A stretch of 64,000 bases of DNA from Thalia democratica (taxonomy: Eukaryota): positions 58,962,001 through 59,026,000 of the forward strand of contig OZ241829.1 of the NCBI GenBank assembly GCA_965202585.1, given 5' to 3'. Of this stretch, positions 19,746 to 47,450 are shown piece by piece (within the stretch, counting starts at the first letter, position 1; each line of letters starts with the position of its first letter). A model generated the notes under the pieces. It was not told where the DNA came from. It worked only from the letters and a program-made list of their open reading frames with translations, and did no database searches. A program made the translations under genes and the position numbers.

Positions 19746-19812
19746 ATGAGTAGATGTTCAACATTAATTTCTTGCTTCGTTCTGGTAGCAGCCTTGGCAT
19801 TACAATCGCAAG
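19746..19812 (+). CDS. Exon 1: signal peptide
   Basis: ATG then MSRCSTLISCFVLVAALALQSQ (short basic N-region, hydrophobic core); donor G|GTAAGA at 19813. Confidence 0.8.
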
Positions 19813-22800
19813 GTAAGAACTGTTATGACGTTTTAAGAGAAAAAACTTATTGTAAATTCTTGCACTAAATCCAGTAATTGTCACGTGGAAGTCTGAGATA
19901 AGACAAAGTCGTCGGCGCGGTGGTTTTTGTAATGACATAACGACAAATAAACAAACCAGAAAAATCCCGCACACTACGCACTGGTTTGAACAAATTGCTT
20001 CTGTTTAAATTTTTGGCAGAGAATGAATACATCGCAAAAAGCTGCAGAGTTACTAGATTATTTTTAAGTTTTTGTAGCCGCTTTTACTTGTATGTATTAG
20101 CAACAGTGGTAGCGACAATAGCCTGCGGACAAAAATTATGTTGATTTAGCTGCTATCTAGTTTCGCCGCTTTAAAACGGTAATGGTGTAGGGAGGGGAGG
20201 GGATCTAAAAGACTAATACGGAAATTATTGCGACCACGAGCAGTATGGATCGATTCAATTATATATTTGGCTGTCGACTTTTTTTTCATTTAACCTTGAA
20301 TATAAACGTTAATCAGATTGTTAAAAAACCAATGAAGCTTAACTGCGACTCTAAAAACTAATTTTCGCTAGTTTTTTAACATACTTTTTAAGCTAACTTC
20401 AAACATATGTAGAGATAAAAATAATTAACAAAGTTTCTATTTAAAAGTGTGTAGCTGAGAAAATTCCTTTTAAACTCGATAAACTTTGTATATTTACATT
20501 ACTAAAAAAAATTTAGTAACCAAAAAAAATTACTAGTATGTACTATGAAAAAATATGTCCTAAATATTTTATGGCACTTTCAGTTAGAATCCAATGTATG
20601 TTAACATTTTTCAATACTGAACTTCAAACTGTAAAAATTCCGTGTTTTAACCTATTTAGAATTCAATACTTTGTTTTTCAGCTATTTTGAACTGCTACCA
20701 AGAATGCTCAGTTGCACCGGCAGGCATGGCTTGCTATGTCAACTCTCCGAAAGGGTACAAGTGTGTCTGCCCAGACAGTGATTTTGAAATGAACGGAAAC
20801 TGCGTTTGTGAGTATTGTTTTTTTTTTAACTTTGTAATACTTTTAAATCAGATGTTGTTCTTGAATACACAGAATTTTTTTTTATCAAAAAAAATATTTA
20901 ATGACAACTACTAGGGTGAAATTATTTTAAAAACAAAATTTTTTACTGAATGTATGTTTCCAACACAACTGAGTAACACGTTCTATAACAACAAGTCTAA
21001 AGGGATAATCATAGTTACATCGCACCATGATACTACGAACTTAATGTTTCGCATTCATTATGATTTGTTGCACTAAAGCTAAAGTCGTGTTAAGTTACTA
21101 AACTTACTCGTCTAGTTTTACCAGACAAAAATTGTTTTTACACAATTTTTTATCTATTCTAACTGTTATGACCACAAAGTTATAAATTAGTTTTTACACT
21201 AACTTTATCTAAACCCCTTTATAAAACGCAATTTTCAAAGCCTTTGTTGAAGTATTGTCAAATGTGTTTTCGTCAAAAAGTTGTCAAATAAATTTTTAAA
21301 GTCTAAATAAGTTTATACATATGTTTAGAGTAATTACATAAACTTCGAGATAAAACGGTATACGAACATCAACAATTAAACAGCAATAAAAGCTAAATTG
21401 CTAACTAAACTTTATACTGTTAAAACTCTTTTAGTTTAAATATTTTGTTTATTCTTTTTGTTGTCTTTGCTTATTTTGTAATTAAACTACCAAGTTGTAA
21501 AACAATTTTTCTTAAATACGTTACTTGAAAAATATTTTAGCTCGTTCAAAACTTTCTCCGTCGACCAACTGTGGGATGTGCCCTGAAGGCGCAAGCTGTG
21601 TCAGAACCTCCAGTACGAGCATGTGTCTCTGTGACTCTGGTCTTTACGGATTAGACGGAGTCTGTTACAGTAAGTCGAACTTATTTTAAATCTTTACAAA
21701 AAACTAATATATGTTCAGAAAGATGTAAAACTGTTGTTGTTTACGTAAACTAGTTTTATTTCATATGGATTTAAGATTAAAAATTAAGATATGATTATCA
21801 AGGTTCATTTAAAAGCGTATCTTAAACAGGTGCAGCAACCAACCTACCTGTACAACCGAAGACCACCAGTTCTTTAGGGACTTGTGCCACTGCACCGCCA
21901 TGCGATTCACCTTTTCCTGCGTCCAGATGCATTGCACGAGACCTGCAAGGGAACTCTGTTTGTCTTTGTCAATCTTCCCACATACTAACACCTACTGGCA
22001 GCTGTCAACGTTTGTTATTATTTCTTTGTTGAAACAAATAGCTGAACGAGTTTTTTAGGCATCCGCATTTAGAAAGCAATTTATCAAGTTAAGATTATTT
22101 TAGTTTTTTACACTCGTTGTAATTTTTAATAAAATAGTAAAACTTGCTAAAAAACGAATGTTTAATTTTTTCGCTTTGCAGCAAGAAGCGACTACGAAGC
22201 TTCTTTTAGTCGAAGATGTCCGAGATGTGTGGCCAACAGCCAGTGTCACCTTTACATGAGAAGATTCTGGTGTGTCTGTAAACCCGGATTTTTCGCAAGA
22301 AACGGAGTTTGCAACCGTAAGAAACTTTAGGCTCAGATACAATTTTTAAAAATCGTGTTACACAAATAAAAGCTTAATAGTTTAATTTTTTACTTGTTAA
22401 GTTTTTCAATTTTTTTTTTGTTAATTTTTAAAGCTAAATAATTATGCAGCAATAGTTCCTGTTATAAGAACGAAACCTATGACTACTCTGGCGCCTACAA
22501 TCCAACCTAGAAGTAAGTTATCTAGTATAATTTATTTTTTGTTATAAAGATTGTAGTAATTCAAATTATTTTTAATGCAAAAAACTAATAAACTTTTAGA
22601 TTATATAGTATACAATATACTTAAAACACAAAATCAAACTGTTATAGTAAAAATATTAAGTAGTGGAATTAAATTGATTAAATTTTTTTAATAACTAAGG
22701 TTATAAGTCTTTTTTAATGACTACTTAAGTTAAATTTAGTTGAAAAAACTACCTATACAACTATGAACATTTTTTTGAAACTAATTTAACAAAGATAAGT

Positions 22801-25800
22801 TACAAACAACTTTAAACTAGTTTGCATTTAATGTTAAATACTCGCAAAAATTATTATATTTTTTTCGAAGTAAATATAAAGTTTCATTATTTTTTGAAAT
22901 TTGTTTATGTAATTTCTATGGATTTTGAAATCCAGCTGTGACATAATTAAAAAAAAAACCATAAAACGATAAAAAATTTAAAGTGTTGAATTAAACCAAA
23001 CGGTATATATATTGTTTATTGAACGACAAAAAGAGCGCTAAAAATATACTGTTCTAAGACCTGGTGCACGAGAAACCTTTCGGTTATCGAGTCGCACTCC
23101 ACGGATACCTTTTAACGTCTTTTCTAGGACTGTATAGGACACAAAAGTGAACTTGAGCTTTAGTTTATATTAAGTTGCTTAGCAATATTTAAACACATAA
23201 AAGTAAAACAGTGTATCGTTGAAACAATTCCATTACTAAATTTTTACAACTTTTTTCTTATTTGTTTACTGTTTAAACTGTCTCTAAACACTACATGGTA
23301 CCATATTTCAGAAAAGCAAGCAGAATACCAAATTTTTTAAGATATATAAGTTAAATATTACAAAAACAATCTTGACACAAACAAACCCATAGATCATCAA
23401 AGCAAATTTTAATAAATTTGTGCACATTAAATGTTGAATAAGTGTTTTAAGATCCGAAAAACTAAAAACATCATAAACTAATTAAAAACTTGAAACTGAT
23501 TTTTAATTATAAAACCAAAGTTATAACACTTAATGTAAACTAAAATATCAACTGTGTATGGTAAAAAGTTGGAGTAAGGTAACATTTTTTTACGGTTTAC
23601 TTTAAATTAAGAAATATAATCAAAAATATTTTAGTTTTAATTAATTCTTTTGTTACAATAAAATTTCATGTGTAAATATTGATTATTTTTATTATTTAAT
23701 AAGTTTGATATACCTTATAGAAGTATGAAAATATTTTTTAAATATGTTAATAATCTAGGTTTTCATTTGAGATATACCACTGCGCATTAAGCTTTTATAG
23801 AAACAGTTAAACTATTTAGATTTATTTATCGTGCTTAATTCTTAACTTTAGTATTAATTTTAATAACTGAAAAATTCTAGTTGATAAACATTTTATGCTA
23901 GTTTTATAACCAACTTAATTTTTGAAACAGTCACATGCACACTGCCAAGACAACTGCCCATGAACGTCATAGTACCTGCAGTGCAAACGTACGCTGTTGG
24001 AGACCAGGTTGCACTTCAGTGCCCACCTGAATTTGACCAATCAGGTGCCACATTTACCCGATGCGGAGCTAATGGACAGTTTAGCGTAATTGATACTGTA
24101 TGCAAACAGAGTAAGTTGAGGCATTTTAACAATAAAAAGACTTTTAACTAGGTGAAAACTGAACTGTAGAATTGAAGTTTATTCGTTTAATAAGAAATTG
24201 TGTGCTTTATGTTCTACGAATTTAATCTTTATGTAAACTTACCTTTGAAAAAGATTCAAACTAAGATTTTTTTTAACAAAAAACCAACAAAGTTCCTAGA
24301 ATTTGCTAACCAAGTTTTTATTAATGCTTATCGCTAAAAAAACCTTATTTTTACAGAAGTGATCTATGGTGACTGGGAAATTGGAGAGTGCAGTGTCACT
24401 TGCGGCATGGGAACAAGATACGATGTTAGACAGTGCTTGCAAGGAGTATGCCGCGAAGGTCTTATCAGAGCTGAGCTTTGTCGACTTCCTGCTTGTGTAG
24501 CTTACAGCGATTGGAAATTGGGAACTTGCAGTGTAACTTGCGGCAGTGGAGTGCAAGTAGACACAAGGACGTGTTTGCAAGGAACCTGCACTGGAGAGCT
24601 TATGAGATCAACTCCCTGTGTTAGGGAAGTTTGCGCAGAGTACGGAGACTGGGAAATTGGAACTTGCAGTGCTGAATGCGGAATAGGAATGCGAAGAGAT
24701 GTAAGAGCTTGTATTCAAGGGACATGCACTGACAGCCTTGTAAGATCGGTTCCTTGTGAAGGATACGATTGTGAAGTGTACAGTGACTGGGTAGCAGGAG
24801 AATGCAGTGTCACTTGTGGAAGCGGAGTCAGCACTCATACCAGAACTTGTGTGCAAGGTAAATGCACGGAGAGCCTTATGAAAACAGTTCCATGTGAGCG
24901 AGAAGTTTGTGTAATGTACGGAAATTGGGTAATGGGAACTTGCAGTGTTGCTTGTGGTACAGGTGTTAGAGTTGATACAAGAGCTTGTATACAGGGTGCA
25001 TGTGAAAATCTTGTAAGAACAGTCACATGTGAACAAGAAGCATGTGTCGTTTATGGTGATTGGGAAACAGGATCGTGTAGTGTTACTTGTGGTCAAGGAG
25101 TAAGAGTCGAAACAAGGTTATGTTTACAAGGGGTATGCACTGAGGCTCTTTCAAGATCGTTTCCATGTGAAAGACAAGCTTGCATCGAGTATGGTGACTG
25201 GCAAATAGGAACTTGTAATGTTGCATGTGGAAAAGGAGTTAGAATTGACGTTAGAGAGTGTGTACAGGGAAATTGTGATGAAGATCTTGTAAGAACGATC
25301 CCATGTGAAAAGGAAGCTTGCGTTATCTATGGTGAATGGGAAATAGGAACTTGTAATGTTGCTTGTGGTACAGGAGTAAGAGTTGATAGAAGAGCGTGCG
25401 TACAAGGCGTATGTACTGAAAGCTTAATTAGATCTGTTCCTTGTGAAAAAGAAGCTTGTGTTATCTACAGTGACTGGGAAGCAGGATCATGCAGTGCTAC
25501 TTGTGGCTCGGGAGTACAAGTTTACAGAAGAACTTGCTTGCAAGGTGATTGCACCGAAGACCTTGTACGAAGAGTTCCTTGCGAAGGACCTGTATGCGTA
25601 GTTTATAGCGAGTGGTTTATAGGATCATGCAGTGCTACTTGCGGTTCAGGTGTAAGAGTTGACACTAGAGAATGTTTGCAAGGTGTTTGTACTGCAGATC
25701 TTCGAAGAACACTTCCGTGTGAGGAAAGCGTCTGTGTTGTATACAGCAACTGGGAAATAGGAACATGCAGTGTTGACTGCGGTACAGGAGTAAGAGTCGA

Positions 25801-28800
25801 CACAAGAACTTGTGTTCAAGGTAATTGTCAAGAAGACTTAGTACGTTCAGTCACTTGTGAAATGCCCGTTTGTGTAGTTTACAGCGACTGGCAAATAGGA
25901 GCATGCAGTGTTAGCTGCGGTATGGGTGAGCAAATTGATACAAGAATATGTGTACAAGGCGTTTGCACTGAAGATCTTACAAGAACAGTTCCCTGTGTCA
26001 GAGAAGTTTGTATTGTTTACAGTGAATGGGAGATAGGAACTTGCAGTTCAACCTGTGGTTCTGGAGTAAGAATTGACAGAAGGACTTGTTTACAAGGTAA
26101 CTGCAAAGAAGATCTTATAAGGTCTCAACCGTGCGCTACAGGAGTTTGTATTGAGTATGGTGACTGGAAGATAGGCTCGTGTAGTGCTACTTGCGGTGTT
26201 GGTGTACAAGTTGATAGGAGATCTTGCACCATAACTTGTTATGGCGAATCTTCCTTAACAGACGAGTGTTCGCAAGCTTCATGCACAGAAGACCTAGAAA
26301 GAAGAACTACGTGCGAGGAAGATGCATGCACTGGGGTGTACGGTGCTTGGCAAATTGGAATGTGCAGTGTTACATGCGGTAGTGGAGTACGTACTGATAG
26401 AAGAAGATGCATGAACAACTACTGCGAAAATGATCTTCTAGTGAGAAGTGTAAGTTGTGTGCAAGAAACTTGTGTTATTTACAGCGATTGGGAAATAGGT
26501 ATGTGCAACGCTGCTTGCGGTACTGGAGTGCGATACGACACAAGAACATGCCTTCAAGGTAATTGCACTCAAGATCTTGTGAGATCCGTTCCTTGCGAGG
26601 GACCAGTCTGCGTAGTTTACAGCGATTGGATGATTGGATCTTGCAGTGTTACTTGTGGATCAGGATTAAGAGTAGATAGAAGAACATGCATACAAGGCTT
26701 TTGTACTGAAAGTCTTGAAAGAACCACGCCTTGCGACGCACCTGCTTGCGTAGTTTATAGCGACTGGATGATCGGGTCTTGCAGTGCAACTTGTGGTTCT
26801 GGAGTGAGAGTCGACAGAAGAATTTGTGTTAGCGGTGCTTGCACAGAAAATCTTATGAGATCAACTCCATGCGAAAGAGAAGTCTGCACTGTTTATAGCG
26901 AATGGATGCTTGGCACATGCAGTGCTACATGCGGCTCAGGCGTGAGAGTAGATCGAAGACTTTGCTTACAAGGTTCGTGCACTGAAGATCTAGAACGATC
27001 AGTTTCTTGTGACACACCTGCTTGCGTAATATACAGTGATTGGATGATCGGAACTTGCAGTGCTGCTTGTGGATCTGGAATAAGAACCGACACAAGAATT
27101 TGCATACAAGGGCTGTGCACAGAAGAACTTTATAGGTCTATTCCTTGTGAGAGAGAAGCTTGCGTTGTTTATAGTGACTGGTCTATTGGAACTTGTAGTG
27201 TCACTTGCGGTTCAGGAGAAAGAATTGATAGAAGAACTTGTATTCAAGGTAAATGTACCGAAAGTCTTATGAGATCAACACCTTGCGAAGCACCTACTTG
27301 TGTAATTTATGACGAATGGGTTTTAGGAGAGTGTAGTGTTACGTGTGGTTCTGGATTCAGAGTCGACCAAAGGGCATGTATTCAAGGACTTTGTACTGAA
27401 GATCTTATGAGGTTCACACCTTGTGAAAGAGAGGTCTGTGTTGTTTACAGCGAATGGACTATAGGATCCTGCAGTACTACGTGTGGCTCAGGAGTAAGAG
27501 TGGACGAGAGAGCTTGCATTCAAGGTAGATGTACTGAAGACTTGTTCCGTTCAATTCCTTGTGAAAATGCTGTTTGTGTTGTTTATGGCGACTGGCAAGT
27601 AGGATCATGTAGTGTTACATGTGGTTCTGGAATTCGAGTTGACCAAAGAACTTGTGTTCAAGGTATTTGCACTGAAGATCTTGTAAGGTCTGTACCATGT
27701 GAACAAGAAGTTTGTGTGATTTACAGCGAGTGGGCTGTTGGATCTTGTAGTGCTACTTGTGGTTCAGGTGTGAGAGTCGACACTAGAGAATGTTTACAAG
27801 GATTTTGCTCTGAAGATCTTTCAAGATCAGCTCCTTGTGAAGGACCTGTATGCGTTATTTACGGCGAATGGAATATTGGAGAATGCAGTGCCACCTGCGG
27901 ATCAGGAGTAAGAACTGATACAAGATTGTGTGTTCAAGGTTACTGTACTGAAGATCTTGTTAGATCAACACCTTGTGAAAACGAAGTCTGTCAAGTTTAC
28001 AGTAGATGGACTGTAGGAGCCTGTAGTGTCACTTGTGGCTCAGGAGTAAGAGTTGATACAAGGGCATGTATTCAAGGTAGATGTACCGACGCCCTTGAAA
28101 GAACTGTTTCGTGTGGAGGAAGGGTTTGTGAAATCTACAGCGACTGGGTTGTCGGAGCTTGTAGTACTACTTGCGGTCCTGGTGTAAGAGTTGATACAAG
28201 AAAATGTGTACAAGGATTTTGTACAGAAGACCTCAGAAGATCGATTCCTTGTGAAACGAGAGTTTGTGAAGTTTATAGCGATTGGTCCATTGGTGCTTGT
28301 AGTGTTACATGCGGTTCAGGATACAGAGTCGATACAAGAAATTGCATCCAGGGATTTTGTACTGAAGACTTAAGGAGATCAACTCCATGTGAAAGGGAAG
28401 TTTGTGTCGTCTACGGAGATTGGACAGTTGGGTCATGCAGTGTAACTTGCGGTTCTGGAACGAGAGTTGACACTAGAGAATGTATACAAGGAAGATGCGA
28501 TGAGGACCTTATGAGGTTAACTCCTTGTAGTCAAGAAGTATGTGTACATTACAGTCAGTGGAGGATTGGAACATGCAGTGCTACTTGTGGTAAAGGTGTT
28601 AGAGTGGACAGAAGAAGTTGTATACAAGGTGACTGTACTGAAAATCTAGTAAGAACAACTGATTGTGACGGACCAGCCTGTGTAGTTTACAGTGATTGGG
28701 AGATAGGAACTTGTAGTGTAACTTGCGGCTCTGGAATGAGAGTTGATAGAAGGACTTGTATACAAGGAACTTGCACTGAAAACCTCTTTAGATCAGTTCC

Positions 28801-34800: not shown

Positions 34801-37800
34801 AAAAACCCGAGGAGTCTTACAGGGATGTATAGTAAGTATTTGTCGATAAAACAGACTAAATTCGTTTAATAACGGATTGTACCAATAGTTTTTCAAACTT
34901 GTATTTTGAAAGTTTAAGTTTTTTGTCTAGTTTTTCTTTGCTGAATTAACTTATTGGGTTATATATAGTGTTAAGATTCTTAATAAAAAATAAACAATAA
35001 TCTTCTTTAAAACTATAACAAGTCAAACGGATTTAAATACACACTTTTAGTTAAACTTACGCTGTTAATATTTGATTGTAATTATAAGCCCTTTTTATTT
35101 TATTTGTAAGCTTGCCTTACTTTTAGGTATTGTCAAATCGCCCTTTACTAAGATTTAGCCAATTTCCAGATTTACAGTCATTTAAAAAAGTCAATACTTT
35201 AAGTAGATAAAAATGTTAAGTATTGCTTCGTTTAAAAAAATTAACTTTAGCTCCAACAAAATTTAAGCTAAGTGTGATAGCATTTTACAAAAAGTAGTTA
35301 ATCATTTAAATTTTTTAACTTACCGGTCAAACGAAAAAGTAATTGCAGATACGGGATAGCGGTAACAGTCGGTGTAATTTTAATGCTAATATAAGATCAA
35401 AGTGCAGATCATATCAAGCGCGATACAGTAAAACGATTACCCTGCAGCCACGAATACACATAAGCGACTACCGTGTTGCAATTTACTCATACACCGTGTG
35501 ATAATATCCAGTGATTAGATCAGTAACTAGAGGCCATAAAAACACAATTTACAGCAGGCGTAAAAAGTTGTGTTGAAAAATATTTTGTTTCAGTGAGCGG
35601 ACCGTTTAACTAATCTTAATGTAGTTTTAAAGTGCTTTGTACGTGCTCAGTTTGTTTTCAGTTATAATATTTTATCTTTAGTTTAGTTCAAAAAGTTACA
35701 AATAGTAGCACAAAATCACATTATGTCAAACATCATCAAGTTTTTTAATCAGATGGAGGCTTCTTCATGGGAATATTAAGATCGAATACTAATTAATAAA
35801 AAATTAACTCGACTTCAAGTCTACAAAAAGAAGCCTTTGCACTCAACACTCAATTGCATGCTACTCAACACACGTTGTGCAAGGACTAAAATTTACAAAG
35901 CGCATATGGTGCTTTAGTTTTTATAAAATTCAAACAAACTTTTTATGTTAAAATGCTTTAACTTTTTTTTTGATATACTCATTTATTTTCTCAACTAGAA
36001 CTGAAGGTTTTATGCACTGCATATGCTTTGTAATTTTTGCCAATTTTTTACTCGTTTGCACAAAAAGACATCATCAGTTCAAATTTTCAGCTGACATACA
36101 GTCTTTTTTTTTTGTCATTTGCATATTTTATCGCTCATTTTATGTTTTAACTAATTTGCTCGTGAATAAACCATCACATAAATTTATACATTAGCATGAT
36201 ACTTTGTTTTTCTAACATTATGTAACTCGATAAACACACTTTCAAGTTTTATAAAGTTTTATAGTTGTTTTAAATGTTTTTGTTTTCTAAGACTTTTCGA
36301 AACTTAAAGTTATAAACACTTGTTTAGACCAACCTTAAACTATTATTAGTCTACAAGTTAGATAATTGTTAAAATATCTGAAGCAAATTAGTTTATCATC
36401 TAAAATTTATATTTGGTTTCAACCATATTTTAAGTATTATTAACATCATTTATCAGTTTCTTTGTGCCTGTATTTTTAACAACCTATATAGCTTCATTGA
36501 AGGTTTAAATTGTAACTTATTTTATGGAGGGCAAAGTATTTTACACTACTAAAAAACTTCTAAAAGATTTTTTTTTATCGTTTTAGTTTTTTCAAGTCTA
36601 TCATTTATGATAAGCTAAAAGAACGTTAACAAAAAGTATACATTGAGTTAAGTTGTTTTATTTAAAAAGTATTTCAGAAACGAACTTAACAATGATCAAA
36701 CAAGTAAAAGTTTTCTTAACCTTTTATAAAAACTTGGCTGATAAAATATTTGTTTGACAAGTTATCTCTAACTAACAAACAAAACAACATATGTAAACTA
36801 TAAAATGTTTGACATATTTAAAACTGTTTCATGTTTTAAGATTTTTAAAAGTTTTAATTTGAAAAAAATATTCAGTATTAGTTTATTAAAAACAATGATG
36901 GGTTATAATCATCGGAAAGAAGTTTAGTGTTATATTTATAAACTCATTATCGTGAATATCAAAAAAATTTAAAAGTTAAAACAACAAATGGAATACTTTG
37001 GACAATATTTAACAGCTGAAGTTTTTAGATTTTTTCATTAAAAAAACAACTTATCAATTTATACTTTAGCGTACTTTCTATTTAGATATAGTTATGTTGT
37101 ATAAGTAAACGAAAAAGGTTGCTTGCTAAGTTTTTAAACTAATTTTTTCATAAAAATACTTTTGTTTAGTTTGTGTGGTATGCAATGCAATATTATAGCA
37201 TGAACTTTCTTTAGCTAAAATTAACTTGTTTGTGTGTTTTCTAACTAACTGTGTTAAATATTCTATATACATATTAATGGTGATAATTATTAAGTAAATT
37301 AAGGAGTTAACTATCTTTAAAAATAGTGTCAAGGTTTTTATCAAATATTCTGCCTTTAAAGCCTTTTAAAAAATAACTAGATTTTTTTTTATTGCAAAAG
37401 CAAATAAATAAACTTTAAAAATTTACTTTAAATTTTGTAAGAGCACAATTCTATTTAGATCAACTACATCAATAGTATAGTGTCAGTTGACTCATTTTTT
37501 CTTGCGTCTAGTCAAGTAAAAAGAAATTAATTTAAAAGCTTTTTTTAATTTTATTTTTTAAATCATAAAACAATTTTTCAAGTTTTTTTTGATTATAAAA
37601 CTAAATACTTTATATAACAATTTTTTTTAAAGAACTTTTTCATTCAATACAACTTTATTTATTATGTACACAAAATATTTTAAATACTGCTTTCATGTTA
37701 AAAATTAAGGTAAAAATTTTTTTAAATTAATGTACTAATTTAGAATGTTAAAAATATTACATTTCTAACTAAATTCAATAAAATTCAATAAATACGTATT

Positions 37801-40800
37801 AAACTTAACTTTTATTTGGTTTATGTTATTGAACTGTCATTTAAATGAAAAAAAAACAAACAAACTAGAACTTTCATCCAAATTCAACTTTGATTATCTA
37901 TAAAAGCAGCTTTAAGCAAAATTAGTGAGTTTTTTGATTTTAACTTAATATTTTTTTACTTCATAATTTGCAAAATTATAACATATTTATTTTTAAAGAA
38001 TAGCAATAAAAATGTACAAATATTATCTAGTATTGTGAAGTATTATGAACTTCAAAAGAAGTATTTCAAGTTCAACTAGACGAATAAAACTGATTAAGTT
38101 ATGACCAAATTTCAATACTCCTAGTTTGCTAAAAGTAACTTAAAAATAGCTTATACAGTTGAAACAATGGTAAAAATGTTTTAGAAATTTCACTGTTCTC
38201 GAAATGTAAAGTATTTTTTTCATAACTAAACAAATTTAGAATATCTATTTATTATAAAAAAGTTTAAGAAATTAAAGAACATATTACGATAGTTAACATT
38301 TACACTGTTTTGTAAAACGAATTTCAGTACAAAATAAGTTTTTGTTTTTTCTAAACTCACATCAACTCTAATGACCTTTGGCTGTTATACTGACTCCCTC
38401 GGGTTATTTAATTTTTTTAACGTGAGCTTTAGCTACAACCACGTGCGTTGAATTTCTTCAATAAAAGTTTAGATTATAAAACATTCAAGTTTTACAACAA
38501 ATCTTTAGATTCTTTTAGGTTTATAAGTAGATACTACATAGAAAATCTAAAACCACTTTTAAACGTTTAAAAGATTTTTATTGTTTGTGTAAATGATTTC
38601 TATTTTTAACAGTTACTTGTGTTGCACCACTGTTGCCTGATGGTGCTTCAGCTTTTGAAAAAGAAACGTACACGTTTGGAGAAAATGTAACAGTACAATG
38701 TGAAAATGGGTACATTCCAATTGGTGATATGATAACGACTTGTAATGAGAACGGTACATTTACTGATCTCTTTGGCTATTGCAACTCAAGTAAGTTTTAA
38801 AACAAGTTGTAACTAAAGTTAATTGTAGTTAAAAGTAAATAGTTGAAAACGATTCCGATCATCTACATTCCACAGTACACAGCACAAAAATAATATCTTA
38901 AAATAAAAAAACAATGATGTTTTTCAATTTAGAGTTAAACTTTTTTTTCTAAACTACAGTTCGCGTGTAAACAATTTTTATTTAATCAAAATGTATCTTG
39001 TTAAAGTATAAAACGTTTTAGTCTTATTTTTGTGTTTACTTTTTATATCTAGATATAGCTCTAAATCGTTTTTTAAGCTTTTTGCTACGGTTATTTTGAA
39101 ATAGTTAAACATTAGAATTACAATTAAATTTGAGTACTTTAAAATATTTCGTTTAAGCTGTTTTTTTAGTTTTTTAACTACTATTTTTTAATAAAATATT
39201 TGTTTATTTTCAGACAGTTTTAATTAATTTTATTATTTTTTTTTAATGTTGATAAGTAGTCGCTGCTAAAAACTTTGTTATTATAAATATTTTATGAATC
39301 ACTTCACTAATACATACATAAGGTAAAAATCTTTTAACTTTTTATAAATTTTTTAATCATTACTTAATAAATTAACACTAGAACAACGTAATGATTTTTC
39401 GCATGACTTTTATTTATATTTTTGAATGCTTTTTAGATGAACTTAAATCTTTTTAGTCTAAACCTTTGATAAATTAAAGCCTGTTAAAACGTTAATTTGT
39501 TAACATGTCTTTATAACCATTTGTTTATAGAAAATATTAGATTTTCTAACCTTGTCTCTAGTAAACTTGATGTTTTTTTTAATGATACCGTCATTTTGTA
39601 TTTTATTTTGTTATCGTAGCTTTGAATACTAGCAACTTTGTAGACTTTACAGCTTAAACTGTTACCTTTACTCTTTTAATAACATTTATTCTTGCAAAAG
39701 CATAAACTTTTTTTTGTACTTTTTGCTTTGTTTTAAACGTAAGTAACCTTGAAAATTTGTAACTACTAGTTTTGAACTTAAGTAATTTATTATTTTTCAA
39801 CAGTTAGATGCGACGCTCCCTCTGTACCTGTAAATGGAATTCCATTCGAAGTAACTTCATTTGGATATGGAGAGTCAATTTTCATCAAATGCAAACCTGG
39901 ATACCAGAACGTTGGTGATGATGGCGCTGTTTGCATTGAAAAAGACTCTTTTGTATACCTTGAACCGTTCTGCTCCCCAAGTAGACAAATTGAAATAAAT
40001 TCTTAGTATTTTTGTTTTATCTATCTTTTTTTATCCATTGGTTTGAAAACAGGTGTTTTTCTTTAAGATTTCAGATATCGCTTATTTTGAAAACTTAAAA
40101 ACTAAGTGTTATGTGATAAACAAACAGTACCTCGACTTTTTTAGTTCAATGCATCCCGCCAAACCCACCTGCTAACGGCAAGAAACAGCAACTTAGATTT
40201 TACGAGTTTGGAGACATAATAGCTTTCCAATGTATTGAAGGGTACTTACCTGTGGGCGACTTGACATCAGTTTGTGGAGAAGATGGCACATTTGAGTACT
40301 CTGACATTAGTTGTGCACCAGGTAAAAAAAAAACTTGTACTTTAATGACTAACCTAATAAAGTAAGTCTATTATTTAGAGTTTTACTTCATATTTGTTTA
40401 AATATCATTTAAACAACTTAATAATTTTAAGCAAACTTTTTGGTTTCTTTCTACAAGCAAATAAAATTATAAAAACTTAAAAGTTTTCTGAAACCACATT
40501 TGTTGTTAAGCTAAAAGTTTTTAATCAATAACTGGAAATTTTATACAAAAAGTAATGTTTTAAAAAACTTTTTAATGCTAGAATAGATAGGTAAATAAAA
40601 ACTAGTAAGCTTACTTAAAAGTATTTGTATACAGACTTTATACTTATCTAAAATTTTCATTATACCTTATTGAATTATCAAAAACTGTGAATATTTTTTT
40701 TTATTAAAATTAACTTTTATTACAATTATCTTTTATTATCATATTTATTACTAAAATAGTTTTTTTTGTAGTTAAGTGTCCTTTACCTTTCATACCACCA

Positions 40801-43800
40801 TTTGCAATGCAAATTGGAAGTCAGACTTCTTTTAACTTTGGAGATGTGCTTGAAGTAAGTTGTAAAGAAGAATACGTTAAAGATGACAAAAGCTTTACAC
40901 GATCAGTCTGTCAAGCTGACGGCACGTTTGATAAACTGCTTATTGTTTGTAATAAAGGTAAGTTTAAGTTATTTAGGGTATTTCAATCTATTTATTCTTG
41001 TCAAATTTTATTTTTTTACAACAAAACATACTTTTTATGCTTCTTAGAAGAAACTTCAGGAGAATCTGGATTGGTAAAGTGCAAAGATTACGACATGCCA
41101 ACAAACTCAGCTACTGCAGTTAAAACTACTTACAATGTAGGCGAAGTTCTAGAGGTCAAATGTCGGGATGGCTACATTTTATTGCAAAATGAACAAATTG
41201 TTTGTGGGCCAAATGGAAAATTCAACAACGTTTTTGTTGTGTGCTTACCAGGTATACAAAATATTGAAGATAATACATTCAAAAAATTATTTAGTTATAA
41301 AGATATTCTCAACAAAGCTGCTACCAAAAAAAACTTAAATTGAACTTACACATGAATTTTTTTATCTATTTTAGTTGGCAAAACGTTCTACTTTTTATGC
41401 AAAGTGTAACTCAAAATAACAAGTGTTAACGTTTACACAAAAAGGTGGATTCGGCACAACAGCTAGAACAACTACAACGACGATGGCCCCAACTACAACC
41501 ACAACAGCGTTCGTAACTCCTGTTGTATCAACGAAGTGTGTGGTACCCACTTTGCCACTGAACACAATTCAGCTGACAAAGGTGGAATATGAAGTGGGAG
41601 AGGTGATCGCTCTCGAGTGCAAACCAAACTATGTCTTAGTCGGCGTCAACTTAGCCATTTGTCAGGTCAACGGTCGATTCAGCAGTATTGACTTTGAATG
41701 TCAACAAAGTGAGTACCGTTTATCAAAATTTATTTTTCTACCAGTAAACTACCCTTTCAAGTACAATGAATATTATAATGAGTTTTAGTATTTTTTATAA
41801 AGAGAACGAATCATACTTATTATTTTACTTTATCGACCAGTTTCCTTAATACCTTGATATTTTATATCGTGTTGATATTTGCTTAAAACAACATAGTTTT
41901 AACTTATGTCAGAAAGTCATTCGTATTGTTTATGATCTAATTTTTTGCAGTTGCTGGCCCAGTAATAACCACTGTTGCCCCAGTAACAACTACAACCGTC
42001 CAACAACGCGTTGTCACTTGTAAAACTCCTGAATTACCTCTGAACTCTATAGAAATAACAGATAATGAGTTTAAAGTCGGAGACTCTATCATAATAAAAT
42101 GTCAGGTCGGATTTGAATTAATCGGTACAAAAACTAGAACCTGCTCGGACACAGGTCTTTTCTCAATCTCTAATGCCCTGTGTGCGCCAGGTTAGTGTTG
42201 TTGCATTTTTTTTGAACAAAAATTTACAAAAAAACAACTAATTTTTAATTTAGCAAACAACGTATATTATTACTAACTGCTAAATACTCAAAATATTGAT
42301 TAAAACCTACACAATAATTACTTGATCTAATTAAAAAAAGAATCTCTAATTTTTTAAATTCTGTTTTGTTTATTTTACTTCAAGACTTGTTGTGATTTTT
42401 ATAACCATAATTTTTAACAACCATGCAACCACAGTTATCTGTGTTTTGTCCGGAAATTTGGAGAACGGACAAATTTTGCCAATTGGTCAGCAATTGTGGG
42501 ACGTTGGTGAAAAAGCAAGTTTTGAATGTGGTGAGGGATACATAGTTCAGGGTGCCGACTCGATTACATGCCAAGCTGACGGTGGTTTTTCTGACAGAGT
42601 TCCTACTTGCGGTAAGTTTAACTTTTATTTATTATACACACAACCGCAACGGAAAAACTATAACTTTGTGTCATATTTTTACATGTTTAGTAGTTTTTAG
42701 TTAAACTTTTACTATGAAAACTTCAAGTGTTTTCCGACATTTCTTCAACCTCAACAGTGAAAGTAAACTCTTACTGTACAAATCCACCAAAAGTAGACAA
42801 CGGCAGTATTGAGCCAGTACAAGCTTTATACCAAGTAGACGACATAATCAACGTCGTTTGTGACGAAGGTTTTACGTTGGTAGGTGAAGCTACTCTTTCT
42901 TGCAATGCAGATGGAAGCTTTGGTTCAATCGCACCTAAGTGCATTATCAGTAAGCTTTCAAGTTTTTTATTTTTCAAAGTCAGACTGTAAGCGCACCTAT
43001 TGTTTTACTTACCACTGCTTAAAAATATACAGTATTTTTTATGTAAGCTAACTTGAAATACTTATCAAAAGCAACCGGTTCTTGTGATACCGTCTACATC
43101 GGTGGAGGGTTTTCAGTTTCTGAAAAAACAAGGTTCAACGTCGGAGAAATAGTCTTGTTCGAGTGTTTTCCCGGTTACAAAATAAAAGGATCGGGGGCAA
43201 GCGTTTGTCAAGATGACGGAAGCCTGAGCGAAATTCCTACTTGTGTTTTAGATGAGTCTGGTTAGTAGTATTTTTTTTATTTTAAATTACTTGCGTAGAT
43301 TGAGATTATTTAAATTGTAACTTCCTACGAAGTTTTATTAAACTTTAATCCATAAATGTTTGTTTATGTTAACTTGTTAAGTCTAATTTTATAAACTTAG
43401 ATTTTAGTACAAATACAATTGTATTTACTATAGTATTTTTGTATGTTTAAAAATAACTAACGGAAAGATGAAACAACGTACAAAATAAAGTTTTCTCTTC
43501 TCTGTTTGTGTTTAAACAGGTTTTTGAAAAAAAAATACAAAATCAAACAGTTTTATATTTTTTAATACTTTGTAATCAATCATAGCTTAAAAGTTTTCTT
43601 ATTTTTTTAACTTAACTACTCTAAAATTATTTTGTAGAAACATTGAGTAAAGTATACACTTCTAATAATGATTTAGAAATTTATATTAAAAATAAAAATA
43701 TTTGTTTTAGTACTGCAGTTTTTTTTCTCTTAACTGTTAAGAAAAATTTTGAAAATATTAACATAAAAAACAATCTAAGATATTTGAGTAATTCAGTTTC

Positions 43801-46800
43801 TATACTCAGTACTCAGTGGCACAATTTCTTTGTTAGTATATTTATATCACTTGTTTTAGTTGATAATACCTTATTGGTTAAAACAATGTAGTGTTATATA
43901 AAAATTTAAATATTTTAAAATATTTAAAAAATTAGAAACACAAATAAATAAAATAAAATAGAAAACAACTAATGATGTTTAGGAATTTGTTTTCAAATAA
44001 AAATATAAAAATATTACTAATTATCCAGTCAAAGAAATATAGCCATTAATGTTTGATTTAAAAACTGATTATCGTAGACCTATGCTGTTAATAAGTAGTA
44101 ACTGAGTTTGTAATAACAACATAAATATAAATTATGTTAAAGTGTTAAAACAATCTGTAAACTTTGTATGTATTCAATATTATTTGACCTTAGAGCGGTA
44201 ATTTACTTTATAACGATGTATAATGACCTTTACTCAATTTTTTTGTTAAATTCAAGTTTGCTGTGTAAAAAACTATTAAGCTAAACATTTCAAATTATCA
44301 CTAGGACGTAACAAAACATTTTATAAAAACATTATTTATGTGAAAAAGGAACTTTTTTTAAGTGCCTAGTATATTTTATCCCGATTTAATTAGTTTCGAA
44401 CTTTTGAACTAATACTTATATCGTATTTTTTAATTTTTCATTAAATTAAGCTATTTAGTATAAGAAAATTAAAAAGTAGTTAAGATAAGATTCAGTTTTA
44501 AAAACAAATCTGATTTGATAGTTATATAAGTTTTTTTTTACCACAAAGAGTCATAATTTTTATGAGTTATTATGAGAAATTTTAAATGAGTTTAAATTAG
44601 TAGTTAAATTTTAATTTAGTAGTTAAATTTAAGGTCTTAATTATAAAAATATTGAACAATGTGCAAAGATTATTTTTCAATATTTATGAATGTAAAACCA
44701 TAAATGCAGAAGTGTTATACTAAGACAGTTTCAACTTCGTTTTACTAAAATTATTTATACATATTGTTGAAAATGTTTATCAAAGTCTGGATTTTCATGT
44801 GCCGAGAGACAACATCAAAACTCATTAACAATATTTTTGATTATATCACTTCGATCATCGTACTAAAGCATTGAGACATAACTTTCGTTTTCATTGTCTC
44901 ATGGCTCATGAGAGTCCAGACATTGGCTGGTATGTCTTTTTCCTATGTTTTTTGATCTTATCACTAACGAGTGTTTTCTTGCTAGTGAATAATGTATTTT
45001 ACGTTGCACGGCAATTAGACAGCCTGACATCAAAGACCACTAAACGGTAACTTTGTGGTAAAACAATATGACGACTGTTGTAAGGGTTAATAGTTACATT
45101 TTTTTTTTGGTTATGACTTACTGACAAGTTTAATGAGAACGAAACCCGGGTCTCAGTCTACCAAGATCTTGTAATGTGATCGAAAACTTTTTTGTCCTGG
45201 ACAAGACGTTAAAAGGTATCCGTTGTGTGTATCTCAATAACCGAAAAGTTCTTCGTGCACCAGGTCCTAGGACCAAATGTTTTGAGCGTTATTCTTTGTC
45301 GTTCAATAAAATAATAAGTATAAAACTGTTATTTTACAATGTTTTTGAGTTTTAAGTAAAATGTTGTATAATAAAACATACTTTAAAAATTTTTAATTGA
45401 CAAAATGTAAACTTTTACGCAAAATAGTGAGAATATGATCTTAGAATCAGATTTTTTTAATGTTTTTTAGTTCTCATCTTCAGTACAAGTATATAAAGCT
45501 AATAGTATTTTTCATCTCGTTATTTAACAAAAAACAGTTGTTCCGAAAAAAATATTTTTAGTAAATCTGTTAAAAACATTTTTATTTAATAGTTAAGAAA
45601 AAGGTTGATACATTGTAGATTGTGTACTGTTTTAGGAACAACACAGTTTTGTTAAAACCTATCTTCAAATGTTATTCTTTACCAAAGGTGAATTTAAAAC
45701 ACCGCTAAAAATACATAGAAATTTTAAAACCTTATTCTCATAAATTTTGATTAGGTTCAGCTTTGTGTGATCCTACATCGCCAGACAATGGAGAAGTTCT
45801 ACCAGGTGTCTACGGAGTGGGATCAATTATATCTTATAAGTGCAACGACGGTTACCGCATGGTCGGTCTCAACGAATCCATTTGCCTCATGGGAGGACTC
45901 ATTATACCTGGAACTCCAGATTGTATAGGTAAAGTATAACATGATATCAGAAGATTTTCAATACATTAACTTTATATTTAAAGTAATTATAAAAATTTTG
46001 TAATATTTTTTATAAAATCCTCATACTGATAGCGTTAAAAAAACTATTTACTTTTGAAATATAACTACTAAAATAATAGGAGATTGATGCTTAACTTTAT
46101 CTTAGCACCTCAAATGTATAGGTTTTGAACGATTCAAACATTTTAACAAAAGCTCTACCAAACCAAGTGTTTATCTGTTTTTACATAAAAATATTTAATT
46201 ATGAATTTACTATTACTATATAAGTTGAAATTTGTCTTTATATTTATTACAATGCAACTTCTGATGAAAATAGCTGAAATATATTTACTTTTACAGTATG
46301 GAATATGTTTTTATAAAATTATAAATTATTCAATTTAACTTTAAATGTTTGTATTGTTTCTTTAAGCCAAAGTCAAAACAAACGGAACATGCTAAATTTA
46401 TAAAACCTACTTTATCATATACTTAAAAACGCTTATGTTGATTTTGAGTAGGCACCTTAATAAATATCTAAACGCAGAACTTTAAAACAAAAATGCATTT
46501 GAAATATTTTTATTAGCAAACGAGGAAAGTTTTAACAAAGCTACATTTACTTGTAAACCTGCTCAACCGAAGAACGGATACATAATACCGCAAGGGCAAA
46601 ATGTATTCCCGGTCTTATCACCTTTTGAGTATGCTTGCAAACCCGGTTACAGGCTGTCCTCCGAGCTAAAGACTGGACTATGTGCCATCGATGGTTCCAT
46701 AGTTGGAACTCCGCCTACGTGCATTCGTTTGTTTATTTTTCATAGATTAAAAAGTTTTACAACGTGTTGTTGTACAAGTCATAAAAACTAGTGATTGGAT

Positions 46801-47450
46801 TACTTTAAATTTTACTTTAAACTTTTTTGAGCAAAAAATATTATTAATTTTTAGAATGTCAAAACTTTAATCTGTTAAATGTTTTAATTTATTTGTTTAA
46901 AACTTTTTTTTTTTGATTAATTCTTTTAAATAAACGAAAATGTTTTACTTTGTTTTTATGCATAAGAATATTTGTTTTCAATAGCATACACTTTGAAACC
47001 TTTAATACATTTAATGTATTCAATCTAAAAAAATTAATGTTTAACTGTCTAAATTTTGAAGCATAATATTCTAAATTTTTTTTTTCATTATATTATTTAA
47101 TTTAAATTTAAAACTTTTATTAAAGATTATAAAACTTTTTTTTAATTAGTTTTATAATTTAAATGGTTCCGCATTTTAAACTCTAAGCTTTCACGTTTTA
47201 ATCTAGCTTGAAGTATAGCTTTTTTTAAAGCTAAACTTCAAGTACTACATTTTTATAGTATAGCTTTTTTTAAGCTACACTTAAAGTACTACTTTTTTTA
47301 AAGCTTACAAAAGTAAGTTCACTTTAATAAGAGCACTATAAAGTTTGTTTGAACAACTCACATTATATTAGATTTTACATTTTGAAACTTATACATTTTT
47401 TAGATTAACAACAACATTTTTAAAACTATGACTTTATTACAGTGGAGTAG
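19746..47450 (+). CDS. Giant secreted mosaic protein: signal peptide + 4 EGF-like + P/T linker + 1 CCP + 59 TSR (TSP1) + 14 CCP; 23 coding exons, ~3,943 aa
   Basis: Hand-spliced exons: 19746-19812, 20682-20807, 21541-21669, 21830-22009, 22182-22316, 22450-22512, 23931-24110, 24357-32555, 33215-33391, 33725-33925, 38613-38789, 39804-39980, 40145-40321, 40772-40957, 41048-41251, 41445-41708, 41951-42190, 42435-42611, 42758-42949, 43072-43260, 45755-45928, 46517-46726, 47443-47450. All introns are GT-AG and phase 1; lengths sum to 11,832 nt (3,944 codons with stop). A few acceptors have alternative in-frame AGs (33725/33731, 41424/41445, 45755/45761). Confidence 0.85.
20682..20807 (+). CDS. Exon 2: EGF-like domain 1
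   Basis: ttttcag acceptor; CYQECSVAPAGMACYVNSPKGYKCVCPDSDFEMNGNC has 6 Cys with a CxC; donor GTGAGT. Confidence 0.85.
21541..21669 (+). CDS. Exon 3: EGF-like domain 2
   Basis: ttttag acceptor; CGMCPEGASCVRTSSTSMCLCDSGLYGLDGVC; donor GTAAGT. Confidence 0.85.
21830..22009 (+). CDS. Exon 4: linker + EGF-like domain 3
   Basis: aaacag acceptor; CATAPPCDSPFPASRCIARDLQGNSVCLCQSSHILTPTGSC; donor GTTTGT. Confidence 0.8.
22182..22316 (+). CDS. Exon 5: EGF-like domain 4
   Basis: tttgcag acceptor; CPRCVANSQCHLYMRRFWCVCKPGFFARNGVC; donor GTAAGA. Confidence 0.85.
22450..22512 (+). CDS. Exon 6: Pro/Thr-rich linker
   Basis: atgcag acceptor; PIVPVIRTKPMTTLAPTIQPR; donor GTAAGT; phase 1-1. Confidence 0.7.
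23014..23136 (-). mobile_element. Same short element family, copy B (intron 6 of the giant gene)
   Basis: Reverse complement matches GACGTTAAAAGGTATCCG..CGACTCGATAACCGAAAG..CGTGCACCAGGTC..CGTTCAATAAAC. Confidence 0.65.
23931..24110 (+). CDS. Exon 7: CCP/sushi domain 1
   Basis: ITCTLPRQLPMNVIVPAVQTYAVGDQVALQCPPEFDQSGATFTRCGANGQFSVIDTVCKQ shows the 4-Cys CCP spacing; AG/GTAAGT sites. Confidence 0.88.
24357..32555 (+). CDS. Exon 8: 8,199-nt exon encoding 59 tandem TSR (TSP1-like) repeats
   Basis: ORF 24359-32560. I counted 59 units with consensus VVYSDWxIGxCSVTCGSGVRVDxRxCxQGxCTEDLxRSVPCExEVC (46 aa/138 nt; unit 5 is 45 aa, unit 14 is 60, unit 15 is 48; with 4 trailing residues the total is 2,733 aa). 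Acceptor ttttacag at 24356; donor CAGG|GTTAAT at 32556 (an alternative in-frame GT is at 32550). Confidence 0.95.
32784..32985 (+). mobile_element. Truncated second copy of the 626-945 MITE (left end), in intron 8
   Basis: GGTTGCACGACTATTCAAATTTGGACAATTCAAATTGCGACAATTCAAATT, followed by sequence colinear with 680-810. Confidence 0.75.
33215..33391 (+). CDS. Exon 9: CCP domain 2
   Basis: VLCDLPDLGPNMVKPFITSFVVGDSWNLRCMYGYELSGNTKITCGANGQFSSVSAACTK; 177 nt; ttttcag/GTAAGC. Confidence 0.88.
33725..33925 (+). CDS. Exon 10: CCP domain 3
   Basis: MPTTCEIPVIPPYALRVNDQQSYKVGDTMELACRSGYTMDESSSSTSLCQPDGTFSEIRLVCNA; donor GTAACT; acceptor at 33724 or 33730. Confidence 0.85.
34482..34658 (+). pseudogene. 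Degenerate CCP pseudo-exon (paralog of exon 9)
   Basis: Same 177-nt length and phase as exon 9. VNFTLSNLGENMFLRFVNSFAFGYYFNVVCESGYSLAGKFQITCGIKRNFSATKAARTI aligns to exon 9, but Cys1 is Phe (TTC), Cys4 is Arg (CGC), and the donor is weak (GTACCC). Confidence 0.7.
38613..38789 (+). CDS. Exon 11: CCP domain 4
   Basis: VTCVAPLLPDGASAFEKETYTFGENVTVQCENGYIPIGDMITTCNENGTFTDLFGYCNS; 177 nt; AG/GTAAGT. Absent from the ORF track. Confidence 0.88.
39804..39980 (+). CDS. Exon 12: CCP domain 5
   Basis: IRCDAPSVPVNGIPFEVTSFGYGESIFIKCKPGYQNVGDDGAVCIEKDSFVYLEPFCSP; 177 nt; donor GTAGAC. Confidence 0.82.
40145..40321 (+). CDS. Exon 13: CCP domain 6
   Basis: IQCIPPNPPANGKKQQLRFYEFGDIIAFQCIEGYLPVGDLTSVCGEDGTFEYSDISCAP; 177 nt. 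Confidence 0.88.
40772..40957 (+). CDS. Exon 14: CCP domain 7
   Basis: VKCPLPFIPPFAMQIGSQTSFNFGDVLEVSCKEEYVKDDKSFTRSVCQADGTFDKLLIVCNK; donor GTAAGT. Confidence 0.88.
41048..41251 (+). CDS. Exon 15: CCP domain 8
   Basis: EETSGESGLVKCKDYDMPTNSATAVKTTYNVGEVLEVKCRDGYILLQNEQIVCGPNGKFNNVFVVCLP. Confidence 0.85.
41445..41708 (+). CDS. Exon 16: Thr-rich linker + CCP domain 9
   Basis: GGFGTTARTTTTTMAPTTTTTAFVTPVVSTKCVVPTLP...ECKPNYVLVGVNLAICQVNGRFSSIDFECQQ; donor GTGAGT; acceptor weak and uncertain. Confidence 0.8.
41951..42190 (+). CDS. Exon 17: Thr-rich linker + CCP domain 10
   Basis: ttttttgcag acceptor; IAGPVITTVAPVTTTTVQQRVVTCKTPELP...KCQVGFELIGTKTRTCSDTGLFSISNALCAP; donor GTTAGT. Confidence 0.86.
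42435..42611 (+). CDS. Exon 18: CCP domain 11
   Basis: VICVLSGNLENGQILPIGQQLWDVGEKASFECGEGYIVQGADSITCQADGGFSDRVPTC; 177 nt; donor GTAAGT. Confidence 0.88.
42758..42949 (+). CDS. Exon 19: CCP domain 12
   Basis: VKVNSYCTNPPKVDNGSIEPVQALYQVDDIINVVCDEGFTLVGEATLSCNADGSFGSIAPKCII; donor GTAAGC. Confidence 0.88.
43072..43260 (+). CDS. Exon 20: CCP domain 13
   Basis: TGSCDTVYIGGGFSVSEKTRFNVGEIVLFECFPGYKIKGSGASVCQDDGSLSEIPTCVLDES; donor GTTAGT. Confidence 0.85.
45190..45310 (+). mobile_element. Same short element family, copy C (intron 20)
   Basis: GTCCTGGACAAGACGTTAAAAGGTATCCGTTGTGTG..CGTGCACCAGGTCCTAGGAC..GTCGTTCAATAAA. Confidence 0.65.
45755..45928 (+). CDS. Exon 21: CCP domain 14
   Basis: ALCDPTSPDNGEVLPGVYGVGSIISYKCNDGYRMVGLNESICLMGGLIIPGTPDCI; donor GTAAAG. 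Absent from the ORF track. Confidence 0.82.
   Translation, partial: VQLCVILHRQTMEKFYQVSTEWDQLYLISATTVTAWSVSTNPFASWEDSLYLELQIV
46517..46726 (+). CDS. Exon 22: CCP domain 15
   Basis: ANEESFNKATFTCKPAQPKNGYIIPQGQNVFPVLSPFEYACKPGYRLSSELKTGLCAIDGSIVGTPPTCI; donor GTTTGT. Confidence 0.82.
47212..47306. repeat. Short diverged tandem repeat (~45-bp unit, ~2 copies)
   Basis: AGTATAGCTTTTTTTAA(A)GCTA(A/C)ACTT(C/A)AAGTACTAC occurs at 47212 and 47257. Confidence 0.6.
47443..47450 (+). CDS. Exon 23: probable terminal coding exon (...L E stop)
   Basis: tttattacag|TG GAG TAG. The first strong acceptor I found after exon 22, followed by a slightly GC-richer UTR-like stretch. Confidence 0.55.

Follow-up and report, generated by a model that had tools for sequence, protein, structure and literature searches.

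A predicted gene for a giant secreted EGF-CCP-TSR-CCP protein in the salp Thalia democratica

Introduction

What kind of protein is made when an 8.2-kb exon holding 59 tandem copies of a small cysteine-rich module is spliced into a chain of much shorter domain-coding exons? The question is raised by a 64,000-nucleotide stretch of the Thalia democratica genome (assembly GCA_965202585.1, contig OZ241829.1, positions 58,962,001 to 59,026,000; hereafter the window, with positions counted from its first letter). A preliminary description, made from the letters alone, had proposed here a very long secreted protein composed of epidermal growth factor (EGF)-like modules, complement control protein (CCP, or sushi) modules and thrombospondin type 1 repeats (TSRs). 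The computational follow-up reported here supports a single conserved gene with a domain order matched by no protein found, whose product we tentatively interpret as an adhesive thread or a scaffold of the extracellular space.

Results

The core of the locus is an open stretch of 2,740 codons on the plus strand (24338–32557), the translation of which holds 356 cysteines. Tandem Repeats Finder resolved it into ~43 copies with a 138-bp period and ~71% matches, and splitting of the translated array on the motif W...C...C gave 59 units, 56 of which are exactly 46 residues long; the remaining three are unit 5 (45 residues), unit 14 (61 residues, eight cysteines) and unit 15 (47 residues). Six cysteines per unit and two supernumerary ones (59 × 6 + 2) make up the 356, equal to the figure given in the preliminary description. 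The exon was placed at 24357–32549, with the donor at 32549 or 32555. The array is irregular at only two spots, unit 5 and units 14–15 (26150–26473); at the latter, unit 14 carries a 15-residue insert with two extra cysteines, possibly a hinge or the remnant of a different module.

Pfam domain scans, which were run on contiguous segments of the window exon by exon, assigned the units to the TSR family: the first ten units (460 residues) matched TSP_1 (PF00090) in eight stretches (E 1.4e-35; 121.6 bits, cut-off 21.6). All 56 regular units share, without exception, the residues Y3, W6, G9, C11, C15, G16, G18, R24, C26, G29, C31, C41 and C46. The cysteine spacing is that of group-1 TSRs, exemplified by thrombospondin-1 (TSP-1), but the first strand and the C3–C4 loop are shorter than in TSP-1, which accounts for the unit length of 46 residues; this period is the shortest among the fetched relatives (48–61 residues). 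The tryptophan ladder is reduced, as WxxW occurs in none of the 59 units and is replaced by an invariant YxxW (59/59) together with RxDxR (52/59). The O-fucosylation consensus Cxx[S/T]CxxG is present in 52 of the 59 units.

AlphaFold2, supplied with an alignment of 14 paralogous four-unit blocks, modelled four units as all-β hairpin modules with a mean pLDDT (predicted local distance difference test) of 75.6. In a Foldseek search against the PDB, the top 17 matches were all TSR chains of properdin (1w0r, 6rus) or TSP-1 (7yyk, 1lsl), with a probability of 1.00, and F-spondin TSR4 was aligned with a root-mean-square deviation of 2.9 Å over 53 residues. The TSR fold of the units was confirmed at the level of these predicted structures.

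Between units, the mean nucleotide identity is 67%, with proportions of non-synonymous (pN) and synonymous (pS) differences of 0.236 and 0.648, respectively. Such low identity, combined with a pN far below pS, indicates that the array is old and that each unit is under purifying selection. The only recent copies are units 54–58, which reach 98.6% identity, and units 50 and 51, a pair at 88%.

The array belongs to one gene on the plus strand (19746–46726), a phase 1-1 chain of signal-peptide, EGF-like, linker, CCP and TSR exons. Each internal exon is bounded by an AG acceptor two bases before its first full codon and by a GT donor one base after its last. The earlier claim that 23 exons splice in frame was reproduced: the internal exons have AG/GT sites, all in phase 1-1, and there is no internal stop. 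One additional, degenerate CCP exon was found. The gene spans ~27 kb with 23–24 exons; its spliced frame encodes 4,018 residues, or 3,954 if the degenerate exon (CCP3) is omitted, and the mature product computed from the spliced model has ~441–444 cysteines, a mass of ~433 kDa and a pI of 4.8. GC content is 42–45% in the TSR exon (24–32 kb), 18–32% in the introns and 21–29% in the window outside the gene. This composition agrees with the figures published for Thalia democratica, whose genome, at 25.3% GC, is the lowest of 38 tunicates and whose coding GC is ~17 points higher (PMC13746493). No further coding-like stretch was found in the introns of the locus.

Exon 1 (19746–19851), with its start codon at the earliest ATG in the open stretch, encodes a predicted signal peptide with the core LISCFVLVAALAL and likely cleavage after QSQG; one extra cysteine lies beyond the predicted cleavage site, and the donor is GTAAAT in phase 1. 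In a Kyte–Doolittle analysis (19-residue mean, cut 1.6), this exon reached 1.87, and the other stretches above 1.6 either overlap with this exon or lie across the junction of CCP10 and CCP11; the signal peptide is the only hydrophobic segment in the modelled exons. Exon 1 is also the single signal-peptide exon at the locus, and neither the TSR exon nor any CCP exon has its own start or leader. This supports the proposal of one long, disulfide-rich, secreted mosaic protein.

Four EGF-like modules follow, all with a six-cysteine C4-x-C5 pattern as read from the translation. Module 1 (20682–20807, phase 1-1) had no Pfam match, and module 2 (21541–21669, phase 1-1, donor GTAAGT) had sub-cut-off matches to EGF_3 and hEGF (E ~0.015). 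Module 3, which shares its exon with a P/T/S-rich lead-in (21830–22009), again had none; its donor was corrected to 22009 (GTTTGT), since any other choice loses the sixth cysteine. Module 4 (22182–22316, phase 1-1) matched EB (E 0.002) and EGF_3 (E 0.008) below the cut-offs. A candidate P/T-rich linker exon of 21 codons (22450–22512, 63 nt) with a CAG acceptor and a GTAAGT donor, in phase 1-1, comes next. No trefoil domain was detected by Pfam in the N-terminal exons.

A hidden Markov model (HMM) built from CCP-like cores of the locus identified 16 sushi modules, all of them on the plus strand from 23.9 to 46.7 kb, and no CCP module elsewhere in the window. All 16 exons exceed the Pfam Sushi gathering score of 20.7 bits (range 22.4 to 59.7 bits or more), and four cysteines are present in 15 of them. 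CCP0 (23931–24110, 24.3 bits, phase 1-1) lies upstream of the TSR exon. Downstream of it, CCP1 (33215–33391, 31.1 bits) and CCP2 (33725–33925, acceptor 33725 or 33731, 37.2 bits), both phase 1-1, are followed by the degenerate CCP3 (34467–34658). Beyond a 4-kb intron come three further phase 1-1 exons, CCP4 (38613–38789, 33.4 bits), CCP5 (39804–39980, 33.6 bits) and CCP6 (40145–40321, 35.6 bits), and then CCP7 (40772–40957) and CCP8 (41048–41251), both of which also match Pfam Sushi. CCP9 is preceded in its exon by a Thr-rich linker (41445–41708, 37.6 bits) and CCP10 by a Thr/Val-rich one (41951–42190, 33.8 bits, phase 1-1). The series continues in phase 1-1 with CCP11 (42435–42611, 35.6 bits), CCP12 (42758–42949, acceptor 42728, 42758 or 42764, 44.7 bits), CCP13 (43072–43260, acceptor 43048 or 43072, 33.2 bits) and CCP14 (45755–45928, 31.7 bits). 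CCP15 (46517–46726, 27.6 bits) is the last recognisable coding exon and ends in PTCI at a candidate GTTTGT donor.

CCP3 differs from the rest in having three cysteines, a partial Pfam match of 22.4 bits, weak splice sites (AAAG at the acceptor, GTACCC at the donor) and a score of 30 bits with our CCP HMM, against 56–74 for the other CCP exons. Judging from its sequence, it is probably a decaying exon that may be skipped. The count of 14 post-TSR CCPs in the preliminary description is, on these grounds, correct for intact modules, although a fifteenth such exon had been passed over; the other domain and cysteine counts (59 TSRs, 356 cysteines, one intact CCP ahead of the array) were also recovered. 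In the 15 CCPs that could be aligned, the canonical tryptophan between Cys3 and Cys4 is absent from every module, its place being taken mostly by Phe and otherwise by Leu or Ile; these CCPs are a divergent subtype. The Thr-rich stretches ahead of CCP9 and CCP10 are, by their composition, likely O-glycosylated hinges. The CCPs on either side of the TSR exon, CCP0 and CCP1, are each other's best match, at 40% identity.

Protein searches with the CCP exons led to genomic contigs of the Tara Oceans and ENA marine metagenomes. One Tara contig (L001) carries CCP7, CCP8 and CCP9; its exons are 91–92% identical to the window, whereas its introns contain indels and are far less conserved. CCP7 is 91.9% identical to its counterpart there (12 synonymous and 3 non-synonymous differences), with conservation falling at both splice sites; CCP8 is 90.7% identical, and its boundaries are those at which conservation drops. 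The acceptor of CCP9 was set at 41445 because a 1-nt indel relative to this contig sits just upstream. CCP7 and CCP8 are separated by an intron of 90 nt (40958–41047) that has no in-frame stop, and a transcript retaining it would stay in frame; its counterpart in the Tara relative shows the indels and many substitutions typical of non-coding DNA. The last CCP exon is present in three other Tara contigs (L002–L004), which represent at least two additional taxa and are 88–90% identical to the window; conservation begins at the acceptor, and in two of the contigs (L003 and L004) the upstream intron has no recognisable similarity to the window.

Summed over CCP7, CCP8 and CCP15 against the closest contigs (L001 and L002), pN/pS is 0.047/0.264 = 0.18. 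The TSR exon has its own comparison in a metagenomic open reading frame (P0103), which is 96.6% identical to units 49.8–51 versus 79–83% to other positions, a position-specific match indicating that TSR units have positional orthologues. The coincidence of conservation with the predicted exon boundaries lends independent support to the splice model. As the matches of the three protein searches comprised genomic contigs with introns and no cDNA-derived contig, the splice junctions are supported by cross-species conservation alone. These comparative sequence data show the locus to be a real, conserved gene under purifying selection in related pelagic tunicates. Two scans of JGI metagenomes, one querying CCP15 and the other TSR units 52–59, gave no match. 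A different type of TSR array was seen in an ENA contig (L005, protein P0096) and in two further marine-metagenome proteins (P0139 and P0142), in which a 46-residue unit of the same type alternates with a ~40-residue unit short of two cysteines; these arrays are 47–52% identical to the one described here and probably represent a different gene or taxon.

To place the architecture among known proteins, a word-indexed search of 5.8 billion proteins, length-filtered, returned 79 hits, and an exhaustive phmmer search with 26 TSR units covered 1.84 billion representatives. Neither search recovered a full-length orthologue; both yielded only TSR-array proteins (29–40% identity) and short metagenomic fragments. 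In precomputed Pfam annotations of the 79 hits, TSR and Sushi occur together only in one Clavelina protein (P0008), which also has a trypsin domain. In none of the 218 TSR-rich or CCP proteins that were fetched is a TSR array flanked by CCPs at both ends, and none has more than 59 TSRs. The statement that the order and copy number were unrecognised from any named protein thus holds for the order, whereas the copy number is less exceptional than it seemed: long TSR arrays are widespread (Lingula, Mytilus, Hydractinia, Oikopleura and ascidians), and a Ciona protein has ~45 TSRs. The domain order is, on sequence comparison, matched by no protein found, but of a familiar kind, i.e., shuffled phase 1-1 modules with a lineage-specific expansion.

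That Ciona intestinalis protein, H2Y3E3 (auto-named 'hemicentin-1'), was the best match (29–35% identity, E 1e-178 to 1e-180). It resembles the Thalia product in its ~45 tandem six-cysteine TSRs (33–45 depending on threshold) and in presumed secretion, but its period is 52 residues versus 46, and our HMM found no CCP in it. Clavelina LOC143455431 (P0008) and a Styela 'SCO-spondin-like' protein (P0014) combine TSR arrays (14–23 units, with a period of ~48 residues in the Clavelina protein) with CCPs; unlike the Thalia product, they have a trypsin domain, 2–4 CCPs in another order and no EGF block that could be seen. The TSRs of properdin and TSP-1 share the fold (Foldseek probability 1.00), the layout C-3-C-10-C-x-C-9-C-4-C, which is also that of TSP-1, and the Cxx[S/T]CxxG O-fucose site. 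They differ in unit length (~55–60 residues versus 46), unit number (3–7 versus 59) and flanking domains, and in having WxxWxxW where the Thalia units have one Trp and one Tyr and so lack a C-mannosylation motif.

SCO-spondin, the protein of Reissner's fibre, is likewise giant, secreted, cysteine-rich and furnished with many TSRs, and many of the hits are auto-annotated as 'SCO-spondin-like'; its TSRs are interspersed, whereas those described here are contiguous. An assignment to SCO-spondin was rejected, as no vWD, TIL, LDLa, FA58C, EMI or CTCK exon was found at the locus, where the cysteine-rich stretches are all signal-peptide, EGF-like, CCP or TSR exons. Hemicentin was rejected because its defining modules are missing, complement C6/C7 because MACPF, LDLa and FIM exons were not found at the locus, and selectins because the modelled exons encode neither a C-type lectin domain nor any hydrophobic segment beyond the signal peptide. 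Sushi-TSP and mega-TSP proteins are large extracellular proteins with sushi and EGF modules and, in some, TSRs, but the thrombospondin superfamily, to which sushi-TSP belongs, is defined by C-terminal EGF modules, type 3 repeats and an L-lectin domain (PMC6526912). It was rejected as well, since the C-terminal 980 residues of the Thalia product consist only of CCPs. A parallel in composition only is offered by oikosin 23 of the Oikopleura house, a secreted protein of a tunicate extracellular structure that contains TSRs and CCPs and many glycosylation sites (PMC3390340); it has two TSRs and two CCPs. Oikosins are house proteins of appendicularians, and a salp builds no house.

Discussion

With a probability of roughly 60%, and by analogy with other modular proteins, we read the product as a secreted EGF-CCP-TSR-CCP glycoprotein that would provide matrix, tunic or mucus with an adhesive thread or extracellular scaffold. 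This reading is based on the length-invariant, disulfide-locked TSR array, the CCP string with its predicted glycosylated hinges and the EGF block with its odd cysteine. The 59 TSRs, joined head to tail, would form a stiff rod in which each unit is held by three disulfides and a Tyr/Trp–Arg stack (YxxW, RxDxR). Glycans or partner proteins could be bound multivalently through the TSR and CCP modules, and the unpaired cysteine beside the EGF block might permit tethering at the N-terminus. Given the O-fucosylation consensus in 52 units, folding and secretion would depend on quality control of the POFUT2 type. Oikosin 23, with its TSRs and CCPs in the Oikopleura house (PMC3390340), offers an analogy for such a role, and TSRs occur in adhesive proteins elsewhere: a flatworm glue protein has multiple TSRs (PMC6410801), and the spore adhesins of Phytophthora are TSR proteins according to the statement in PMC3869178 that cites Robold & Hardham (2005).

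Several points weigh against an extracellular scaffold. Complement and pattern-recognition proteins are just as typically built from TSR and CCP modules, and the proposed function is drawn from analogy only. The EGF-like modules stay below the Pfam cut-offs (best E 0.002–0.1), two of them without any match. The suggested length of ~0.3 μm for the array, with a further ~60 nm for the CCP string, is an estimate from textbook module sizes (~5 nm per TSR, ~4 nm per CCP). Finally, the abrupt loss of conservation past 46726, detailed below, suggests a further exon, which could encode an anchor.

The typicality of these modules for complement leads to the alternative of a humoral innate-immune molecule, a soluble pattern-recognition protein or complement regulator in which the TSR array would be a greatly extended properdin that attaches to the surfaces of microbes or of altered self, and the CCP string would resemble the regulators of complement activation. 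Such strings are the hallmark of complement regulators, TSR, CCP and EGF modules co-occur in C6/C7, and filter-feeding tunicates rely on humoral immunity; moreover, properdin TSRs were the best structural matches of the modelled units. Nevertheless, we consider such a role unlikely: properdin has 6–7 TSRs versus the 59 found here, MACPF, LDLa, FIM and protease modules were not found at the locus, the CCPs lack the canonical Trp, and a strict 46-residue period with strong purifying selection on every unit fits a structural rod better than diversifying recognition.

Two other alternatives concern the form of the product. A membrane-anchored adhesion protein, with a giant ectodomain like that of a selectin or adhesion receptor, would have a transmembrane or glycosylphosphatidylinositol (GPI) exon downstream of 46726. 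In four taxa, conservation extends through ACTTGCATTC and ~7 more bases (GTTTGTT, or GTTCGTT in L002) and then breaks off at a ~10-nt indel, i.e., within a few bases of GTTTGT, the donor type that is also needed at 22009; a donor at 46726 and a further terminal exon are favoured for these two reasons. One downstream acceptor, at 47787, is in phase and opens a hydrophobic frame of 53 codons. That frame, however, has 23% GC like the adjoining non-coding DNA, and frames rich in Phe, Leu and Ile are expected at such an AT content; the search for a transmembrane or GPI exon met only AT-rich hydrophobic frames of the kind that composition alone would give, and the interval from 46.8 kb to a caspase exon at 52.6 kb contains no block that is conserved or enriched in GC. 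Read-through past 46726 would add a 22-residue tail in the window (stop at 46789–46791), and such tails are short and unrelated in the three sequence types, each from a different taxon. A proposed terminal micro-exon (47443–47450), which would complete a Leu codon and add Glu and a stop behind an in-phase CAG acceptor, is a candidate end, its acceptor being one of many phase-compatible ones downstream, which otherwise open only AT-rich frames. An anchored product is, in our assessment, quite unlikely, and absence of a membrane anchor is plausible on the sequence of the locus. The earlier claim of no transmembrane anchor stands for the modelled exons, where no hydrophobic segment other than the signal peptide occurs, but not for the end of the gene, which points to an exon downstream. 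It is less probable still that no single product of ~4,000 residues exists, the TSR exon being usually skipped as a cassette (leaving a 1,287-residue EGF4-CCP16 protein) or the parts coming from separate, trans-spliced mRNAs. The frame is indeed kept when the TSR exon or CCP3 is skipped; yet strong purifying selection acts on the TSR exon, and its units keep their positions in a related taxon, which argues that this exon is translated, and it has no start or leader of its own although TSRs need the secretory pathway, with one signal-peptide exon found at the locus.

Returning to the scaffold or adhesive thread, its origin may be sketched as the entry of a TSR exon, in phase 1-1, between two sister CCP exons in the gene of an EGF-CCP protein. 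The reciprocal best match of CCP0 and CCP1 gives modest support to such an insertion into a pre-existing EGF-CCP gene. The TSR exon would have grown by unequal crossing-over long ago and may still do so at its 3' end. A more specific version, in which the protein is a fibre-forming part of the salp's feeding mucous net or tunic, is an outside chance suggested by analogy. The TSR mega-exon would then act as a cassette by which a short EGF-CCP protein becomes a mucous-net or tunic fibre, and a rod of fixed pitch (46 residues per unit in 56 of 59 units) and ~0.35 μm could contribute to a regular sub-micrometre filter mesh. To our knowledge, the protein composition of tunicate filters is essentially unknown.

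The gene is a candidate for proteomic and in situ work on salp mucus, tunic or humoral defence. It offers a clean natural case of what appears to be an old, length-locked TSR array in a single exon that is still growing at one end, and with 52 predicted O-fucose sites, it may be an extreme client of POFUT2-type quality control. It adds to the giant secreted phase 1-1 mosaics common in tunicates and marine invertebrates; no new mechanism is indicated.

Other features of the window

No Rfam family was detected across the whole window, and no direct repeats of at least 40 bp were found in 32.5–47.5 kb. A dispersed repeat of ~130 bp, SINE (short interspersed element)-like and without an Rfam match, occurs in three copies with 82–83% identity, at 45183–45313 and 5401–5532 on the plus strand and at 23015–23130 on the minus strand; two of the copies lie within introns of the TSR-array gene. 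A ~150-bp segment is duplicated at 5035–5183 and 13203–13351, with identical open frames on both strands.

The next gene on the plus strand is represented by a caspase exon (52615–52863; Pfam Peptidase_C14, E 3.8e-12), ~6 kb downstream of the last CCP exon. Farther on, exons of a WDHD1/Ctf4 (AND-1) homologue are located on the minus strand at 62350–63072 (Pfam Ctf4_C, 1.9e-13; Mcl1_mid, 3.7e-07). The presence of these two genes indicates that the TSR-array gene ends before ~52 kb.

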